A stretch of 13,289 nucleotides of DNA. It comes from Fonticula alba ATCC 38817. Its lineage: Eukaryota > Protista > Nucleariida. The number at the start of each line of letters is the position of its first letter. Position 1 is the first letter of the stretch. This document shows, one piece after another, positions 1 through 13,289 of the stretch. The notes beneath the pieces were generated by a model, which saw only the letters and a list, made by a program, of their open reading frames with translations, was not told where the DNA came from and made no database searches. The stretch is taken from NCBI GenBank assembly GCA_000388065.2, contig KB932304.1. One strand, 5' to 3'. The translations under genes were made by a program, and so were the position numbers.

Positions 1-424
1 AAACTCTAAGTCTAGTACTATTATCCAACAAAACTATCAACCTATCATAAACCCCTCTCATTTTTGGGAACACATAAGCAATATGAGCTAGACCCACCTC
101 TGAACGAGGAAGCTTTATACTTAATAACCTATCAAATAAGTCTACATCCAACTTCCTAACCATAAAATAAGCAATAAACCCTCCTACAAAAAAAAAGAGT
201 AATAATATCTGCCTAAGAGCCAAAGACTGGTAGTCAAATCCCCTAAACCCATCCATAACAAATGAAATAGCTACTATGGAGAACACAAACAGAATAAACT
301 GCAATAATAAATATAACACACTAAACAAAATCTCAAAATAATTCAAATGAGACAAGCCACTCAATCTTTTATGGATATCCTTATGATTTGTAGAGAACAA
401 CCATTTAGAAACAAATTGATTCAT
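1..424 (-). CDS. Chimeric membrane-protein ORF, 3'-truncated by the window edge (>=141 aa): cox1-like first 17 codons fused to an orf282-family body
   Basis: Manual translation: ATG at 424-422 preceded by an in-frame TAA, no stop down to base 2. MNQFVSKWLFSTNHKDI-HKRLSGLSHLNYFEILFSVLYLLLQFILFVFSIVAISF...GFIAYFMVRKLDVDLFDRLLSIKLPRSEVGL... Absent from the ORF track, probably because no stop falls in the window. Confidence 0.8.
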   Translation of the reverse strand, partial: MNQFVSKWLFSTNHKDIHKRLSGLSHLNYFEILFSVLYLLLQFILFVFSIVAISFVMDGFRGFDYQSLALRQILLLFFFVGGFIAYFMVRKLDVDLFDRLLSIKLPRSEVGLAHIAYVFPKMRGVYDRLIVLLDNSTRLRV

Positions 425-457
425 TTATGATTTGTTTATAGTATATTGGTTGTTTAT

Positions 458-530
458 GGCGGACTATAGGATTCGAACCCATGACCAACAGAATCACAAT
501 CTGGTGCTCTACCAACTGAGCTAAGCCCGC
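458..530 (-). tRNA. trnH: tRNA-His(GTG)
   Basis: GCGGGCT/AGTCCGC acceptor, D arm GCTC-AGTTGGTA-GAGC, loop TT-GTG-AT, T loop TTCGAAT, discriminator C. Confidence 0.95.
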
Positions 531-541
531 ATAATTTTAGT

Positions 542-613
542 TTGAGAAAATGGGATTCGAACCCATGCGTCATGAAATCAAAATCCATTGCCTTACCACT
601 TGGCTATTCCTCA
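542..613 (-). tRNA. trnQ: tRNA-Gln(TTG)
   Basis: TGAGGAA/TTTCTCA acceptor, ATGGA-TT-TTG-AT-TTCAT anticodon arm, ATGGG-TTCGAAT-CCCAT T arm. Confidence 0.95.
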
Positions 614-869
614 ATGGAGTTTCCTCCTTATATTTTGTTAATATTAGTTCTTAAATTTAGTTAATTTTTATTAGAATTAGATAAAACTTCTCTAACTAAT
701 GATACTTTTTCCATATTAACACAATATGAATATATCATGTTATAACTAATTGTAAAAAATACACAAAACATAAAAGAAAGATTAAAAAAAGTTAATAAAT
801 CTACTTGTGGCATAAAATATAATATATAATGGCTATATTATCTGGAAGATTATTAATATATTATCTATT

Positions 870-952
870 TGAGGGCGATGGGATTCGAACCCATGCTCAC
901 ATTCGTGGATAGATTTACAGTCTATTGCTTTAAACCGCTCAGCCACACCCTC
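870..952 (-). tRNA. trnY: tRNA-Tyr(GTA), long variable arm (bacterial type)
   Basis: GAGGGTG/CGCCCTC acceptor, ATAGA-CT-GTA-AA-TCTAT, variable region CCACGAATGTGAGC. Confidence 0.95.
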
Positions 953-954
953 AA

Positions 955-1026
955 TGAGTTTAACAGGACTCGAACCTGCGACCAACGGATTAAAAGTCCG
1001 CTGCTCTACCACTGAGCTATAAACTC
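955..1026 (-). tRNA. trnK: tRNA-Lys(TTT)
   Basis: GAGTTTA/TAAACTC acceptor, GCGGA-CT-TTT-AA-TCCGT, GCAGG-TTCGAGT-CCTGT, discriminator A. Confidence 0.95.
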
Positions 1027-3220: not shown

Positions 3221-3635
3221 AGAGTTTATAGCTCAGTTGGTAGAGCAATTGCTTTGCAAGCAATAGGTCATGGGTTCGAGTCCTGTTAAACTCCATAAGA
3301 ATTAAGTATTCTATAGTATAGTTTATAGCTCAGGTGTTTCTAGGGTGTTGAGCTATTTATATGTTTTTTATATAAGAATGTTGTGTATTTTCTGCCTGTA
3401 GTTTATGGTTTTATCCTTGTTGTATAAAAAATATGGTTTATGTAAAATAACCTATTATTTAGGTTATTTGATACTGTACAGAGCACTTCTGTATGTTAAG
3501 CTCTTTAAACTATTAACTATTGGTGTTATAATAGTTTTATATAGCCCCTATTTAATATTCAAGTAGGGGCTTATTCAAAGTATAGTAAAATAAAGAGATT
3601 ATTTTACTAGAATATATCTATATGTTTAATATTAT
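3221..3635 (+). repeat. Diverged duplicated module, copy 1 (copy 2 at 6731-7130)
   Basis: Collinear blocks: tRNA(-like) gene plus CATAAGAA; 3392-3425 vs 6888-6921 (28/34 identical); AGCCC(C)TA hairpins; 3607-3635 vs 7102-7130 (24/29 identical). Confidence 0.8.
3222..3294 (+). tRNA. trnA: tRNA-Ala(TGC) by anticodon, with an atypical Lys-identical acceptor stem
   Basis: GAGTTTA/TAAACTC acceptor, GCTC-AGTTGGTA-GAGC, ATTGC-TT-TGC-AA-GCAAT, ATGGG-TTCGAGT-CCTGT, discriminator C. Confidence 0.8.
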
Positions 3636-3833
3636 CTTGTATATTAATTAATAATTTATTAGTAGTTAATATCATATTAAATAGCTATTATTTCCTGCTG
3701 ATTGTAAAGTATTATAATCCTTTTAGATTTAGAATTTATTAGCGTTATATTTTGTATAATTTATGTGGGTTTTTATTTCGGTATGTTTTTGTGGTGTAAT
3801 GTAAGATTTTATATTATATATATACATGTATAA
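3598..3833 (+). pseudogene. Decayed partial duplicate of nad6
   Basis: 3723-3773 matches nad6 4029-4079 at 48/51 nt (LDLEFISVIFCIIYVGF vs LDLDFIGVIFCIIYVGF); stops and frameshifts upstream, TAA at 3831-3833. Confidence 0.8.
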
Positions 3834-3866: not shown

Positions 3867-4427
3867 ATGTATATGGTGCTATTTTCTTTAGAGTTTTTAG
3901 TATTTTTTATTTTATTTGTAGTTTTATTGTGTGCTCTTCGTTTTTATTATAATTTTTTGTTTGAAGAGTTGACATTGATAAATTCTATTCTTTGTATTTA
4001 TTTTATTGCTTTATTGATATTATTGAAATTAGATTTAGATTTTATTGGTGTTATATTTTGTATAATTTATGTGGGTTTTATTTTGGTTTTAATTATTCAC
4101 ATGATTAGGTTTTTTTCAGGTTTTGGTTCGGTAGAAAATGTTATTTCATTTTCTAATGTGTTGTTTTTATTGTCTCCATTTTTGTTATATGTATGTTTTA
4201 AATTTTTTGGGGGTTTGTCTCCGATGTTTGAATCTAATGGTGTGTTAGAGCTGGATCTTTTAAATGGTTACGAATCTATTAATGTTGGTTTATCTAAGCC
4301 TATTTTATCTCAAGTTAGTGATTATATGTTTTTTTTTGATGGGTTGATTACATTGGGGTGTATATTAACTTTATTGACAGCTACTATAGGTGTTATTATT
4401 ATTAATAAATACGGAAATAAAAAGTAG
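3867..4427 (+). CDS. nad6: NADH dehydrogenase subunit 6
   Basis: Hydrophobic 186 aa with DFIGVIFCIIYVGFILVL (Nad6 YVGAI-type motif) and C-terminal LLTATIGVIII (LLxAMIGAIVL-type motif). Confidence 0.88.
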   Translation: MYMVLFSLEFLVFFILFVVLLCALRFYYNFLFEELTLINSILCIYFIALLILLKLDLDFIGVIFCIIYVGFILVLIIHMIRFFSGFGSVENVISFSNVLFLLSPFLLYVCFKFFGGLSPMFESNGVLELDLLNGYESINVGLSKPILSQVSDYMFFFDGLITLGCILTLLTATIGVIIINKYGNKK

Positions 4428-4915: not shown

Positions 4916-6289
4916 ATGTTAATTGACTGTACTTACTCAGGTGAATTAATAGAAACTAAGGATAAAGTTCTATCTGGTCTGAATAAAGATAATAAAAGAA
5001 CAGAACAAACAGTATTATATGAATCTCATAATAAAGATTCTGCTTATAAAGTAATAACTTCTAATAACATCACTTTCATTATGAAAGAATTAAAGTATTT
5101 TAATAGTATTAATACTATTAAATATAGTTTTAATGAGTCAATTTATTTTAATTTATATCATAAATTAAAATTTATTAAAATTCCTAATAAATTTTATTTA
5201 AAACAATGGTTTCACATAATGAAGCTAAATCATGTAAATTTAAAATATTTTAAATTAAGAAATTTAATTGAGTCTAAGTATACTAAATTAAAGTCTATTA
5301 ATGGTACAATTCCTGAAATTGATATAAAAATGTTAAATACTAATTATATTGAAAGAATATCAGAAAGATACTTTAATAAACTAGATATTTTTTCTAAAAA
5401 TTTTATAAGTGAGTTGTATCCTTTATTTAATTCATTTAGATTAAATGAATTTAAAATAATAAATAAGCCAGATGGACTTTATAGAAAACACAATGAGTTT
5501 AAACCACTAGACCATGGTGTTTTAAGAACAGTTATGTTAGGATTTAACTTCCTAAGTGATAAAAAGATAGAATTAAGATCTAACTCAGATTTATTATTGA
5601 GTGATGCAAGGTCTATAGAACCAAAATTTTTAAATTTCAAGCAAAAATATTTTTCTGAAAGCAGTGATCATTCAATATATAATTCTAATGCCACTGCAAA
5701 TATAAATAATATATCAGTATTTAAAAATACTGATAAAATAAATAATATATTTAATAGTATATCCTTATATAAATTTATAGATATTCAAATGAAATTAAAA
5801 TTAGTAGCTAACAATAATTTAAATAAATTAATAAAAACAAATACAAAAACAAAAAAACAAAAATATAATAAATGGAACAACAAAAGCTACTTAAAAGTAA
5901 TATCATCATACTCTAACATAGAGCATGACACAGGATTTATTACAAGAATATACTCACAATTTACTAATTATTCATTACCATATTGGAATGCACACATCTT
6001 TATACAGATGCTAAGACTAATATTCATGTCAAACAGATTCCTACTATTAAAATTATTATCAAGAGCACTATTCACATTCAGATTCCACCCAAATAAAAGC
6101 AAAGATGCACCAAAAGCTTTAAAAATAGAAGCCTCTGGATTAATAAAAAAATTAGGAAGATCAAACAAAATACAATACAAACTAAAAGACACAAACAAAA
6201 ACAACATCAAATACGCCGTAGATTACGAAAACCTAACTGCATTAAGCAGATACGGAATCACAAACATAAAAGTAAGCCTAGAAAACTAA
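4916..6289 (+). CDS. rps3: Ribosomal protein S3, C-terminal part with a long low-complexity N-terminal region (rps3_b)
   Basis: C-terminal KALKIEASGLIKKLGRS...VDYENLTALSRYGITNIKVSL fits the uS3 C-domain (KGIKI.CSGRL...R...IDY....A.T.YG..GIKVW); ATG 1 nt after the rps3_a stop. Confidence 0.8.
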   Translation: MLIDCTYSGELIETKDKVLSGLNKDNKRTEQTVLYESHNKDSAYKVITSNNITFIMKELKYFNSINTIKYSFNESIYFNLYHKLKFIKIPNKFYLKQWFHIMKLNHVNLKYFKLRNLIESKYTKLKSINGTIPEIDIKMLNTNYIERISERYFNKLDIFSKNFISELYPLFNSFRLNEFKIINKPDGLYRKHNEFKPLDHGVLRTVMLGFNFLSDKKIELRSNSDLLLSDARSIEPKFLNFKQKYFSESSDHSIYNSNATANINNISVFKNTDKINNIFNSISLYKFIDIQMKLKLVANNNLNKLIKTNTKTKKQKYNKWNNKSYLKVISSYSNIEHDTGFITRIYSQFTNYSLPYWNAHIFIQMLRLIFMSNRFLLLKLLSRALFTFRFHPNKSKDAPKALKIEASGLIKKLGRSNKIQYKLKDTNKNNIKYAVDYENLTALSRYGITNIKVSLEN

Positions 6290-6298
6290 AAAAAAAAA

Positions 6299-6730
6299 AT
6301 GATAGTATCAAGACTAAACTATACTTCTTTTTCTTTAGTTAATACACCTAGCATAGAACACAGTGTATTCTTATACTCTGCTATTCTAGCTATGACTCTT
6401 TCTCTAGTAATATATACTGCTGGATACTGTGTAACAAATAACCACAGAACAGACCTAAACAAAATAAGTGCTTATGAGTGTGGATACAGTCCAAACTCTC
6501 ACGAATCAAACCAATACAATGCAAACTTCATAATAATATGTCTATTATTCCTACTAATAGACCTAGAAATACTATTCCTAGTACCATTCCTATACACTGT
6601 TGACTCCATAGACACTACCACATGGAATATCTTCATATACTGTATGTGCACTATCATAGGAGGAATAATATTCGAACTACTAACAAGCTCGTTCGGAAAA
6701 CTAGGTAAAATCATCAAACAAAACAAATAA
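6299..6730 (+). CDS. nad3: NADH dehydrogenase subunit 3
   Basis: KISAYECGY and FLLIDLEILFLVP motifs. Confidence 0.93.
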   Translation: MIVSRLNYTSFSLVNTPSIEHSVFLYSAILAMTLSLVIYTAGYCVTNNHRTDLNKISAYECGYSPNSHESNQYNANFIIICLLFLLIDLEILFLVPFLYTVDSIDTTTWNIFIYCMCTIIGGIIFELLTSSFGKLGKIIKQNK

Positions 6731-7130
6731 AGAGTTTATAGCTCAACGGCTAGAGCAAGTATATACACCTGATATGGGTTCGAATCCCATTAAACTCCAT
6801 AAGAAATAAATATTATAAACACATTGGGGATTTACAGTATGTAAAGTAATTTATCTGTACTATTTATATAACAAGATAGTACATACTCTACCTGAATTTT
6901 ATGGCTAAATCCTTGTTGTATTTTAAATTTAGTTTTTGTGATAAAAACATAAATTAATTTAATTATATAGTAGACACAACAGTCGTGTATATTATGGGAT
7001 TTTTAATATAAACTATTAAAATACCCATAGATCTATATAGCCCTATACAACAATATTATATAGGGCTAACTCTAACAATACATAAATAATGTAGTGTTTA
7101 TCTAGAATATATTCATGTGTTAAATCTTAT
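6731..7130 (+). repeat. Diverged duplicated module, copy 2, with three hairpins
   Basis: Blocks shared with copy 1; stems TGTACTAT/ATAGTACA (6856-6883), TATGGG..TTTTAATA/TATTAAAA..CCCATA (6993-7029), TAGCCCTATA/TATAGGGCTA (7038-7068). Confidence 0.8.
6732..6798 (+). ncRNA. tRNA-like element lacking a proper anticodon arm (pseudo-tRNA or t-element)
   Basis: Perfect acceptor GAGTTTA/TAAACTC, D stem GCTC/GAGC and T arm ATGGG-TTCGAAT-CCCAT, but only 17 nt between D and T arms (22-23 expected); starts 1 nt after the nad3 stop. Confidence 0.75.
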
Positions 7131-7806
7131 ATAAATATATAATAAATATATTATACCTAATCTAACCTGAAGAGGAATAAATAATATTATAAAATAAAAT
7201 AAAAATAATTTTTATTTTATAAATGTGTATTTTATAATACTAATACATTAATAAAACAATATAGAACCAGACATGTAAGTGTCAACCCCATATAATAAAA
7301 ATAATAAGTTCTTAGGTTAGATTTAGTATGCTATAGACTAACTATCAAAACTACATAAATATTTATATTCATTAGGTAGATAAAAAACTTATTGATCTAG
7401 TACATAATACTTATACTAAATATAAATATAATATTATATTTATATTTAAATACACTTATTCAGGGTACATCCTAACTATGATTAGATAAGGTATAAGTTT
7501 CTAAACGATGGTCTGTCAGTACCTTCCCTTTATTAAATTCTAAATAAAATAGATATAACTAAAAAAAGTATATAATATACAATACATTATAAATAATTCT
7601 ATTAAATTAATAAATGTATTGGGGACTGCTAAATAACCCAAATTATTAAAACATATAATATCTAACTCTAAAATATAAAGCCTTAAAATATGAATAAGCA
7701 CCCCAATACATCCTATAGCTAAAATATTATACTATAATATTAATAGCATATATTCTAAGTCTTATTTTGCGGGATAATTAATAAACAGAAATTATTTTGG
7801 ACTGAA

Positions 7807-7832
7807 AAAAAAACTAGGGGCCTAGTTTTTTT
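7807..7832. terminator. Symmetric hairpin with A/T tails, terminator- or processing-like
   Basis: AAAAAAACTAG-GGGC-CTAGTTTTTTT, 11-bp perfect stem, 50 nt past the stop of the 7882-8064 ORF; function inferred. Confidence 0.5.
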
Positions 7833-7881
7833 AATATAAACTAATTTTAAACAGGTTCCTATTAAAACATATTGGTAATAA

Positions 7882-8064
7882 CTAATAATAGGTGCTGGTT
7901 CTAATATGTTTTAATAATTTTAGGTTTATTAAATAAAAACAATATTGTTTAAATATTGTTTGTACCTTATATTTTAAAGATATATATATTATACCAATAA
8001 TGTAGGCTGAATTAGCATATTTAAATAGAATTATAAACCCCCTACTTTTAAAATGTCCTATCAA
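7882..8064 (-). CDS. 60-aa ORF, truncated paralog of the orf282 N-terminus (mini-gene or pseudogene)
   Basis: IILF-x6-YIIGIIYIS matches orf282 in residues and spacing; TTG start. Confidence 0.55.
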   Translation of the reverse strand: MIGHFKSRGFIILFKYANSAYIIGIIYISLKYKVQTIFKQYCFYLINLKLLKHIRTSTYY

Positions 8065-8163
8065 GCTTCTCTAAATACACAGCTATTATTTCTATCTAGA
8101 GAGTTATATTCTAGATTATAACCCACTAGTTTTAGCCAGTACAGCCTTGGACAAATACATCAA

Positions 8164-8520
8164 CCCTTCTTCACTATAAGCCTATACTATAGGAGCATTG
8201 TGTTAGAGGAAATACACTTAATAAATTGAGTTCACTAACATATTGGTGACTGCAAGCCATGATTTTATATAAGAAAGTCTTCACATATAATTCATTCATA
8301 AGTAAAGAGCTCTAACTCTAGTAGGTTCTAACTATTAGATAGTAAGAACTAACACAGTTAGCCTCACACCTACTACCAAACACTATTTTGATTAAGAACT
8401 TAATCACTAATTTAAAATTAACATTAGAATTACATAATAAACCTAAAGACATTATAATACAGATAAATTAATCAAAATTACAATAATATAAACTAGTCTA
8501 AACCTACGCACTAAAAATAA
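8164..8520 (-). pseudogene. Decayed orf282-family copy B
   Basis: One frame with multiple stops gives LFLVRRFRLVYIIVILINLS, VYYVILMLIL, IKSWLAVTNMLVN and SEEG, collinear with orf282 LFIVKFLMYIIGIIYIS, YYYVIIVIFI, ISSW..LVN and SEEG. Confidence 0.45.
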
Positions 8521-8599
8521 AATTATAAATGTTTTTATATTAATAGTGTAAAACTAAGATTATACCCATTAGCTATTGTAATGCTATATCTTCCTAGTA

Positions 8600-9105
8600 G
8601 ACCTGTGCTATATCTAAAACAATATAAATATAACCCAAACAATATCTACTAGGAAAATACTACTATATAAATAACTGCAAGTAGTGTATACACACCTATC
8701 AACTCAATTATAATTTAGCCAGAGTCTTAACAGAGCTTAGTTCACGATTATTTCCTAAAATAATATCCAATAAATACATTTTCTAAGAAATAGCTTAACT
8801 AAAATAAAACAATGATACAGAGCTAGAATTAACCCTTGTAATTCATAAGTCTATAACCATAGATTTATGAATCTAACGAGATACACACTGGAAAATCATA
8901 AGGGTATTATGACTCATATAATATTAGCACTAAAAATGATATAAATACTACAAAAACTATAGCTCTCAACCCCACCCATAACACCATTACTTTAACAAGA
9001 AAAATAAACTGCTATAAAATTAAGACAGAACAAAATACTGTATATAGCCACATATAGATGTCCTGTACTATTCAATTCGTATAATATCTTTTTAATTAAA
9101 ACCAT
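8600..9105 (-). pseudogene. Decayed orf282-family copy A
   Basis: ATG at 9105 gives MVLIKKILYE...SILFCLNFIAVY, with TAA after 37 codons. The 14-mer GTATTTATTGGATA (8764-8777) is identical to orf282 2022-2035. LF-LE-YLLD is recoverable with two 1-nt indels, followed by LGNNR..VKTLAKL vs IGPAR..VKFLVKV. Confidence 0.6.
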
Positions 9106-9143
9106 AATACTAACTAAAGTAACTACACAACAAAGAATTAGTT

Positions 9144-9200
9144 TACAGGCAAGGGGATTCGAACCCATTCACAGGTAAACCTGCTCTTTCCTAGACCTGA
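9144..9200 (-). ncRNA. Minimal tRNA-like element (T arm plus partial acceptor, no anticodon loop)
   Basis: TCAGGTC...GAGCAGG-TTTA-CCTG-TGA-ATGGG-TTCGAAT-CCCCT-TGCCTGT-A; acceptor pairs at 5 of 7 positions, D arm reduced. Confidence 0.6.
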
Positions 9201-9285
9201 AAAAAAAAAAATTATTAAATGTTTTTTATTTAATAAATAAAAAATCTATCAGGGATTTTTTTTATGGTATCGTCTTTGTTTATAT

Positions 9286-11076: not shown

Positions 11077-13272
11077 TCAATATTTAAAACATGTTGAGAC
11101 TATTTCCTCATCTATTTCTTTAAGAAGTAGACAGAGCTTATATATCTCAATGGCTTTTTTTATCTCTACTATACTGGGAGTATAGTCCATTAACACCTGC
11201 CTAGTTTTTAAACATTTTTTTAAATAATCTATTAATAAAATAATATTTTCATTCTCTATCTCTTGATAAATATTATTAAATAGCATAATGTTTAACTTTC
11301 CTTCAGCTAATAACTTAATTAATTCTGACGTAAAACAACTATCAGGCTTTGTTAATTTAAACCATCTTAAATGTTCTAATGATTTGTTGTGTGTTTTATA
11401 TTTAATTCTATGTATCTTTTTTTCTAGATTAGATGAATCTAAGTTACTATTTACTAAAAAAGTCCTTAACTCATCTTTAGTAAAGTCTAATTCAGGAAAT
11501 AACAAGTTTAAAGTGTCTTTAATAAATTCTGTATTATTATACTTATATAATTCTGTTTTTACTCTCCTTGTATAAAGAGAGTTTAAGTCTTTAGATAAAA
11601 CTACATTATTATATGTATTACAATTAATATAATTTTTCATTATATTAAATAAGAAATCCCTTCCTCTAAAAGAACCCTGCTCATAAAAAGGCTCCCCCCT
11701 TTTAGATAAAGGTTTTATCGCCCCCTTTTTAAAAAAGAATTTTGTCCTATTAGTATATTTTGTTAATCCTATTCTTTTGTTTTGTCTCAATATTCTTTTC
11801 TTTACTCTATGGGCTATAACCCTTTTATAATGATAAGTAAATAAACAATTGGCATATTTATGGACCATTCCAAAGATAGATTTTCTTAACCTAGGTTTAT
11901 TTTTAGTTAAGAAAAATTTATTACATCTTTTTCTAAGCCTCAATAGACGATATGGTTTATATCTTAATATCCTAACGTTTTTAATCTTTAATTTAATTCT
12001 TCTTTCTATTTTTAAGTTAGCTAAATCTTGTTTATCTTGGATCTTTTGTCTAGCTGCATACTTAAAAGAAAATTTCCTTTCAACTTTTTGAAATAAAAAT
12101 CCTCTAAAATGGCCTATCCTAGCCATAGTTGAAAATGTGTTAGGATCCATTATATTAAAAGTATTAAAAAACCTGGATGTTAATCTAACATCCACTGCAT
12201 TTCTTGCTAGACTATAAATAAGGCGCTTGTCCTCTAAAAAATATGGCCATTTAATATTTTTATTATTAATTTTATTATAATCTTTTAACTCTGAGAAAGA
12301 GTTAAAATAATATAATTTAGATTTACCCTCTTTTTTAATATATATAGGATCAGGAAAAATATCTGGGTTATTTAATAAAAAATTATTAAATGATTTAGAA
12401 CTTTTAGTTTTTAAATTATACTTATAACGACCTACAACATATTTAAATATAGCTAATCGTGACCTCCTCCACTTAAATTTATACTTAGATCTAATAGTTA
12501 ACTTATCTTGTTTATACTTTAAAATATAAAAAGTGTTAAAAGAGCCATGAATTAAACGCTCTAATCTATAAAATAAAACTTTATCTTTTAAATTAGCCCT
12601 ATTACTAATAATTTTAAAATATTTATTAATAGCCAACCTTATAAAATGAAATAAGCCCCTATTCAACTCAGTAAACGTATTCAACCCACCAAATTTATAA
12701 TTCTTTGAATACACTTCACTAAACTCAGATTTCTTATAAGAATTATACCCAGAAATCTTTAAAAATAACTCCCTCTCATACCTCTTATACTTAATAAAAG
12801 CATGAGAAGAACCCTTACGCTCATAAAAATACCTATAATTATAAAAAAAAAAAGGATCTCTAACACCAACATACTTCAACCTCCCATATTTTTTTAAATC
12901 ATATAACATCAAAAACCTCCTCTTATTAAAAAAATTACGCCTCCTTAAAAAAAAAGGAAGCCTCCTAAATTGACCCAAAACATCTTTAGATTCACACTTC
13001 AAATTCACCAACCTACCCCTCTTATTAAAAACCCTATAAAACTTAATAGAATTAGGCAAAGAAACATGAACCCTCCTAAACTCCAACTGAGACAAATCAT
13101 CAATAACACCAGAAACCGATAAAACCGGCAAACCAACCCCACCAGCTGCCAACAAATCCAATACAGCCCCCTTCAAAAACAACAACTCCAAATCATTAAA
13201 ATCCAACAAATAAACAGACCTAATACCGTCCAAATTCAAATACTCTCCTCTCACAAATAAAATATTTTTCAT
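11077..13272 (-). CDS. orf731, very Lys/Arg/Phe-rich protein, possibly a highly diverged or fused ribosomal protein
   Basis: 731 open codons in AT-rich DNA, same strand as and directly upstream of rps7; no unambiguous family motif. Confidence 0.75.
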   Translation of the reverse strand: MKNILFVRGEYLNLDGIRSVYLLDFNDLELLFLKGAVLDLLAAGGVGLPVLSVSGVIDDLSQLEFRRVHVSLPNSIKFYRVFNKRGRLVNLKCESKDVLGQFRRLPFFLRRRNFFNKRRFLMLYDLKKYGRLKYVGVRDPFFFYNYRYFYERKGSSHAFIKYKRYERELFLKISGYNSYKKSEFSEVYSKNYKFGGLNTFTELNRGLFHFIRLAINKYFKIISNRANLKDKVLFYRLERLIHGSFNTFYILKYKQDKLTIRSKYKFKWRRSRLAIFKYVVGRYKYNLKTKSSKSFNNFLLNNPDIFPDPIYIKKEGKSKLYYFNSFSELKDYNKINNKNIKWPYFLEDKRLIYSLARNAVDVRLTSRFFNTFNIMDPNTFSTMARIGHFRGFLFQKVERKFSFKYAARQKIQDKQDLANLKIERRIKLKIKNVRILRYKPYRLLRLRKRCNKFFLTKNKPRLRKSIFGMVHKYANCLFTYHYKRVIAHRVKKRILRQNKRIGLTKYTNRTKFFFKKGAIKPLSKRGEPFYEQGSFRGRDFLFNIMKNYINCNTYNNVVLSKDLNSLYTRRVKTELYKYNNTEFIKDTLNLLFPELDFTKDELRTFLVNSNLDSSNLEKKIHRIKYKTHNKSLEHLRWFKLTKPDSCFTSELIKLLAEGKLNIMLFNNIYQEIENENIILLIDYLKKCLKTRQVLMDYTPSIVEIKKAIEIYKLCLLLKEIDEEIVSTCFKY

Positions 13273-13289
13273 AAAAAAAAATTTTATAA
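13252..13289 (-). repeat. Source copy of the 38-bp leader/start repeat; runs to the window edge and may be longer
   Basis: Reverse complement is identical to 1565-1602. Confidence 0.95.

Follow-up and report, generated by a model that had tools for sequence, protein, structure and literature searches.

The window analysed here is a stretch of 13,289 nt from Fonticula alba ATCC 38817 (contig KB932304.1). It is AT-rich organellar DNA with eight tRNA genes, and as its nad5 gene contains no TGA and always encodes tryptophan by TGG, the standard code applies. At its left-hand end a minus-strand reading frame begins at ATG 424, abutted on the 5' side by a TAA stop, and stays open as far as base 2, giving a reading-frame translation of 141 codons that reaches the window edge and is a lower bound, as the 3' end of the ORF falls outside the window. 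Codons 1-17 (374-424, minus strand) read MNQFVSKWLFSTNHKDI, HKRLSG... comes next, and codons 18-141 (124 codons) proved unrelated to any known sequence in homology searches. The minus-strand order leading into this frame is trnK, trnY, atp8, trnQ, trnH (530-458) and then ATG 424. The features needed below are as follows:

1-373, minus strand: orphan part of the ORF, codons 18-141, with two predicted transmembrane helices and running past the window edge (translation, hydropathy, shuffles, codon usage)
343-371, minus strand: 29-nt element, T AAA AGA TTG AGT GGC TTG TCT CAT TTG A (KRLSGLSHL), with a paralog in another mitochondrial contig
371-374, minus strand: CCAT linker, the first letters unlike cox1, common to the window form and form D
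374-424, minus strand: Cox1 N-terminus, codons 1-17, MNQFVSKWLFSTNHKDI (translation and alignment to COX1 chains)
KDI-HK junction, minus strand: predicted junction peptide of the chimera, WLFSTNHKDIHK type (from translation)
375-435, minus strand: cox1 leader (425-435) and first 50 nt of cox1 coding sequence (424-375), identical to the genuine cox1 locus (RNA and DNA contigs)
375-1007, minus strand: repeated segment common to the cox1 locus and the chimera locus, minimum extent (single X6 unitig and depths)
458-530, minus strand: trnH (tRNA search)
540-614, minus strand: trnQ (tRNA search)
661-813, minus strand: atp8, starting MPQVD (translation)
869-953, minus strand: trnY (tRNA search)
955-1026, minus strand: trnK, part of it inside the repeat (tRNA search)
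6299-6730: nad3 (Pfam Oxidored_q4 on the identical product)

The original prediction, made from the letters alone, was of a frame open from ATG 424 to the edge in which a Cox1 N-terminus is fused to a membrane protein, and the frame, with MNQFVSKWLFSTNHKDI followed by HKRLSG, was reproduced exactly. The Cox1 identity of codons 1-17 was borne out by a composite of these codons and GVLYLIFAS (the nine residues which real contigs carry past base 375), which aligned with residues 2-23 of solved COX1 chains at an E-value of about 2e-07. The membrane label is supported by two hydrophobic segments in the product, at about residues 30-57 and 70-90 (Kyte-Doolittle above 1.6). Across the 124 post-junction codons, 6.5e-05 of mononucleotide shuffles remained open, the remaining five frames of 1-373 hold 7-15 stops apiece, and codon usage in this region, scored against nad5, nad3 and atp8, was positive in the ORF frame only. 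A frame of this length without stops, in DNA so rich in AT, speaks to some degree against a remnant that is entirely dead.

No relatives of the product were found: there was no Pfam family above noise (for the 124 residues available), no homolog of the 141-aa product in a word-based search of 5.8 billion proteins or by phmmer against 1.84 billion representatives, and no Atlas match above 0.72. When IMG/VR, JGI metagenomes and GTDB genomes were scanned for exact matches to the cox1 start, the atp8 start and the paralog start, these too returned nothing for the surroundings of the chimera. Nothing significant was obtained by tblastn and blastn of the ORF against the rest of the window, or by BLASTP of its product against orf282 and orf186, and membership of an in-window family of membrane ORFs was rejected on these searches.

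Intact cox1 and the repeated segment

Logan contigs were aligned to positions 1-1500 of the window. DNA contigs from five runs, two of culture DNA (X1 and X2) and three from independent samples (X6, X8 from soil and X9 from sludge), join ...AAGGATAT straight to AGGGGTGTTATACC..., which reads KDI-GVLYLIFAS. As this join is present in DNA contigs it is genomic and not spliced. Identity with cox1 extends through base 375, which is position two of codon 17; at position 374 the window has C and cox1 has A, the codon being Ile either way, and the minus-strand sense past base 375 is AGGGGTGTTATACCTTATATTTGCATCTTT in both DNA and RNA contigs. The uninterrupted cox1 5' end lies on DNA contigs of 2363-2365 nt (2363 nt in X2; 1001 nt in X1), and it is by this 5' end that the intact cox1 is known. 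All of the cox1-body DNA contigs stop at base 404, an overlap (375-404) of exactly k-1 = 30 nt, and thus the de Bruijn graph branches at 375. An intact, uninterrupted cox1 therefore exists as DNA apart from the chimera, and the donor gene has been kept, with its intact 5' end in the same mitochondrial DNA as the chimera in each of the five runs.

The chimera and cox1 share an upstream segment of at least 633 bp (375-1007), which ends in cox1 codon 17. In X6 one unitig spans 375-1007, beginning exactly at 375, at a depth of 51.4, compared to 21.8 for the cox1 body; the corresponding depths were 269-293 and 122.5 in X8, and 20.6-24.4 and 9.7 in X9. Relative to the shared segment, the depth of the cox1 body is therefore approximately 0.40-0.47 across three independent samples, indicating a repeat of about two copies, one of which runs into cox1 and the other into the chimeric ORF. 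A 34-nt node (371-404) ties window letters 371-374 to the cox1 start at a depth of 140 in X8 and 10.1 in X9, making up the remaining depth of the shared segment in both samples. The chimera thus roughly equals cox1 in copy number; the depths are assembler word depths, from which X6 implies a ratio of window form to cox1 form of about 1.4 rather than 1. Sampled-word shares for 1-1200 were 1.00 in X1-X7 and 0.99 in X8 and X9. The A-to-C junction leading into the chimera rests on these word shares, the 371-404 node and the branch at 375 rather than on a spanning read; contigs over the ends of the stretch are absent from the listing, in which depth is zero at 1-300 and 1051-1300 for every run.

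An atp8-type ORF of 50 codons (MPQVDLL; 661-813, minus strand) lies between trnY and trnQ, with no Pfam match on record for its product. Because this ORF sits inside the repeated segment, the mitochondrial DNA probably has two or more copies of atp8, trnH, trnQ and trnY. The genes trnK and trnA (956-1011 and 3238-3293) are alike in their acceptor and T-arm sequence, 75% over 56 nt, and it is this likeness that makes the Logan unitigs break near 1007, so that the right-hand end of the repeat is hidden.

Another reading is that the window is misassembled or a nuclear copy of mitochondrial sequence, the 374/375 junction then being absent from the mitochondrial genome; in its favour, assembly here meant resolving a repeat no shorter than 633 bp, and no displayed read or contig crosses 374/375 in the window configuration. 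This we regard as extremely improbable, since the branch falls at exactly 375 in every DNA sample, X8 and X9 show letters 371-374 joined to the cox1 start at a depth typical of mitochondrial DNA, the 0.99-1.00 word share of 1-1200 is common to the culture and to independent samples from soil, sludge and elsewhere, and the non-cox1 branch has about half the depth of the shared segment, far over the nuclear level. The junction is seen as a branch in the mitochondrial graph, and the two copies may lie on one molecule or on alternative isomers.

The same data bear on a reading in which the window holds cox1 exon 1 and a group I or group II intron with an in-frame ORF, the exon carrying GVLY lying farther left and being joined by splicing. 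In-frame intronic ORFs are frequent in the cox1 genes of fungi and protists; the exon part here would end in U (base 375), like group I 5' exons, and the sequence after 374 is missing from RNA contigs, as an excised intron would be. Against this, the joined cox1 stands in the DNA contigs of all five runs, and the depth of its body relative to the 5' segment is about 0.40-0.47, where an optional or fixed intron predicts about 1. The original prediction had proposed an intron model search; when this was run no group I or group II Rfam match was obtained in the window at E up to 1, with 374 nt of the candidate inside the window. The sequence has no GUGYG start, the ORF (124 residues searched with Pfam) has no LAGLIDADG, GIY-YIG or RT/maturase domain and is of a two-helix membrane type instead, and a paralog of the ORF start has an ATG of its own (see below). 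The intron reading was therefore rejected, on the genomic KDI-GVLY join, the unequal depth and the lack of an endonuclease or maturase family, and we consider it very unlikely. The ORF does resemble those of homing endonucleases and maturases in the cox1 introns of fungi and protists in that it follows a short cox1 start in frame and is absent from RNA; it differs from them in the joined cox1 in DNA, in the depth ratio of about 0.40-0.47, and in that no intron core (within the 374 nt inside the window) or endonuclease/maturase domain was found.

Contexts of the cox1 start

The 29-nt element immediately downstream of the junction has no second copy within the window, and a paralog of it was found in another mitochondrial contig (record 1 of X2; 4983 nt, depth 315), which matches 343-371 with 1 mismatch and has a loose end to the right of 371. 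There the element is preceded by TAG ATG AAG CTT AG, that is by a stop and then its own start, reading MKLS-KRLSGLSHL in the same frame. With a paralog carrying its own stop and ATG, the orphan ORF type has its own native start (MKLS). In the window copy the cox1 flank and leader, the 17 codons and a His codon replace MKLS, in frame. The chimeric structure put forward in the original prediction is thus supported by the DNA join, the depth ratio, the shared flank of at least 633 bp and the ATG-bearing paralog.

In form D, found in X8 and X9, the cox1 start and CCAT are present and the sequence then diverges to the left of 371, reading KDIH-SYKFVRRFRD; its contig is 2085 nt long, with a depth of 71.7 in X8, and is open in frame for the 10 visible codons. 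As CCAT is common to the window form and form D, base 371 is a second breakpoint, and the fusion partner past 371 differs between strains. The depths in X8 would fit two strains, with the cox1 depth of 122.5 shared and the CCAT node of 140 made up of form D (71.7) and the window form (about 68).

A fourth context for the cox1 start joins 476 to 398, skipping 77 nt at 4 nt of microhomology, with new sequence next. This joint was found in contig L007 (2012; L007:1430-1550), in which the Lys codon is also altered by an A-to-G change and the new sequence starts after GGATAT, and in the sludge sample X9 at a depth of 6.5. The tail of L007 runs into an Illumina adapter, and its end was considered as a pure artefact, an idea which was dropped as the same 398-to-476 joint occurs in X9; the variant may be a real, degenerate third copy. 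A search for contigs encoding atp8 gave L007 only, and none is on record for orf282. The cox1 start therefore stands in at least four sequence contexts.

Other parts of the window also carry duplicated sequence. A 38-nt perfect inverted copy (1565-1602 and 13252-13289, the latter reaching the right window edge) holds the orf731 leader and first 7 codons (MKNILFV). Position 1582 opens an ORF of 21 codons (MKNILFVYVPASETLVWVVSD*) in the frame of orf282 (ATG 1702), from which it is split off by a TAA at 1645-1647; 1565-1602 is thus a second duplicated gene start and not a continuous fusion. The nad3 region (6284-6922) belongs to a 2120-nt unit, an identical contig in 14 samples, flanked on the left by nad5 in L001 but by orf465 in L002 and L003; the window tracks this unit for 639 nt only, diverging after 6922, and these flanks suggest that arrangements alternate or that strains differ. 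The ORF orf186 is partly duplicated, as a direct repeat of 56 nt (3723-3778 and 4029-4084; 91% identity) has one copy within it and one immediately upstream. Beyond the nad3 region, 6923-9285 is about 2.3 kb without a long ORF, where the sole Rfam matches were tRNA-like elements and no rRNA match was obtained (both at E up to 1).

Transcripts across the junction

RNA contigs of 2394 nt from two runs of the 2012 culture, X26 (depth 86) and X27 (depth 69), match the window only at 375-435 and then continue into the cox1 body (...AAG GAT ATA GGG GTG TTA TAC CTT ATA TTT GCA TCT, KDI-GVLYLIFAS); they pass base 375 without a branch and contain no words from 1-374. Each is the 2363-nt DNA contig with 31 nt added and stops at 435, 22 nt below trnH, and a contig from a compost metatranscriptome (X25) matches 375-438, again followed by the cox1 body. 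The 5' end of the cox1 mRNA at about 435-438 looks tRNA-punctuated. It falls inside the part shared with the chimera, which has the cox1 5' flank in common, the 375-1007 unitig being on both branches. When 40 words of 1-460 were sampled, a share of 0.05 (about 2/40) was found in the four culture RNA runs (X26-X29) and 0.10 in X25, as expected from 375-435 or 375-438 alone. No chimeric RNA was found in the contigs of the four culture runs and the one metatranscriptome, and the chimera is thus unexpressed or rare in the RNA libraries checked. This evidence is at contig level, from libraries which are probably poly(A)-biased, and atp8 is likewise missing from the RNA contigs, so that mitochondrial transcripts are detected with limited sensitivity. 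The RNA runs of organism B (2026 raw reads) were left out, because its DNA runs have about 450 million contig letters and are probably from another organism or a community merely containing Fonticula.

The original prediction had supposed that the ORF has taken over cox1 expression signals, or that its product could interfere with the insertion or assembly of Cox1. Neither suggestion gained support, as the RNA contigs are unbranched at 375 with about 2/40 words of 1-460, and there was no chimeric RNA in the contigs of X26-X29. It had also suggested looking for cox1 elsewhere in the genome and for RNA across base 374, where a lack of transcription would point to a silent remnant: the search found the uninterrupted cox1 in DNA contigs, identical to the window down to 375, and the RNA contigs contained no chimeric transcript, in agreement with a silent or very weakly expressed chimera.

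The same chimera might instead be a working gene, expressed from the processing site, leader and start codon of cox1 in unsampled conditions such as aggregation or fruiting, with a membrane product that affects respiration or Cox1 assembly, or one that is selfish like plant CMS proteins. In keeping with this, at least 633 bp upstream are identical to the expressed cox1, the frame is open for at least 124 further codons (P about 6.5e-05) with mitochondrial codon usage and two hydrophobic helices, the copy number is like that of cox1, with word shares of 0.99-1.00 in samples from 2012 to 2025, and form D is also in frame over its 10 visible codons. We nevertheless think a working gene unlikely, because no chimeric RNA was seen in the four culture runs and one metatranscriptome though the cox1 mRNA reached a depth of 69-86 (X26, X27), there are no homologs on which selection could be tested, an in-frame fusion has a 1-in-3 prior, and what follows 371 is not the same in all strains (window form against form D), suggesting turnover rather than conservation. 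With no chimeric transcript in the available RNA the chimera is most likely silent or very weakly expressed, a by-product rather than a working gene.

Origin and parallels of the chimera

In our reading a mitochondrial segment of at least 633 bp is repeated, comprising part of trnK, trnY, atp8, trnQ, trnH, the leader of cox1 and 50 nt of its coding sequence. An intact, transcribed cox1 lies behind one copy, and CCAT followed by an orphan two-helix membrane ORF behind the window copy. The chimera arose as sequence was duplicated and recombined in a mitochondrial genome that is rich in repeats and rearranging, and the tRNA-punctuated 5' end, leader and start codon of cox1 could let it be expressed like cox1. 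The repeat, the intact cox1, the in-frame fusion and the copy number are structural observations, and the potential for expression is something that we infer from them. With good confidence, we take the chimeric ORF at the edge of this repeat to be a by-product, either silent or expressed very weakly, rather than a functional gene.

Mitochondrial ORFs that are chimeras with the 5' ends of cox1 or atp genes are a classical cause of cytoplasmic male sterility. In the literature searched they are reported only from plants and one green alga, and that literature holds no description of the structure of the Fonticula mitochondrial genome. The closest known parallel to the Fonticula chimera is orf256 of wheat (Triticum timopheevii cytoplasm), a CMS-associated ORF which carries the coxI flank from -228 to -1 and 33 nt from the start of the coding sequence, the rest being unrelated, and the DNA of which is present in several species with RNA expression in some only (PMC4030846). 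The Fonticula chimera similarly has at least 583 nt of identical 5' flank and 50 nt from the start of cox1 with the rest unrelated, intact cox1 is kept in both, and the chimera is without RNA in the contigs checked, as orf256 is in some species. It differs in that the host is an amoeboid relative of fungi and not a plant, in that the repeat also holds tRNA genes and atp8, in that the partner appears to be a pre-existing orphan gene with its native start replaced, and in being known from DNA alone, with no transcript, protein or phenotype. Male sterility as such is inapplicable to Fonticula.

Chimeric ORFs are also generated in the multipartite mitochondrial genomes of plants, where recombination at repeats goes with alternative flanks and with duplicated 5' ends of genes (PMC11312923), and the Fonticula genome is comparable in its four or more cox1-start contexts, its alternative nad3 flanks and its duplicated orf731 leader. 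It differs from plant isomers in that some of these contexts may be strain differences among environmental samples.

Of the properties of plant CMS-type ORFs, the chimera has the in-frame fusion, the retained donor, the shared donor 5' flank and a hydrophobic predicted product, and transcription was not found in the RNA contigs of X26-X29. It is conceivable, though we rate it as rather improbable, that Fonticula has a system resembling plant CMS, in which orphan membrane ORFs repeatedly capture the leaders and initial codons of essential genes (cox1 here, the orf731 leader before orf282, and further cox1-start contexts of other strains) and in which the chimera is conditionally expressed, for example in aggregation or fruiting, as a membrane protein that alters respiration or is selfish. 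If true, this would be the first case outside plants and algae. The biological impact of the chimera is speculative. For annotation, no intron or split cox1 should be called at the 374/375 site. The presence of the same architecture as in plant chimeric ORFs, at mitochondrial copy number, in a sister lineage of fungi means that repeat-driven "start capture" is not confined to plant mitochondria, and the mitochondrial genome of Fonticula emerges as a structurally dynamic one.
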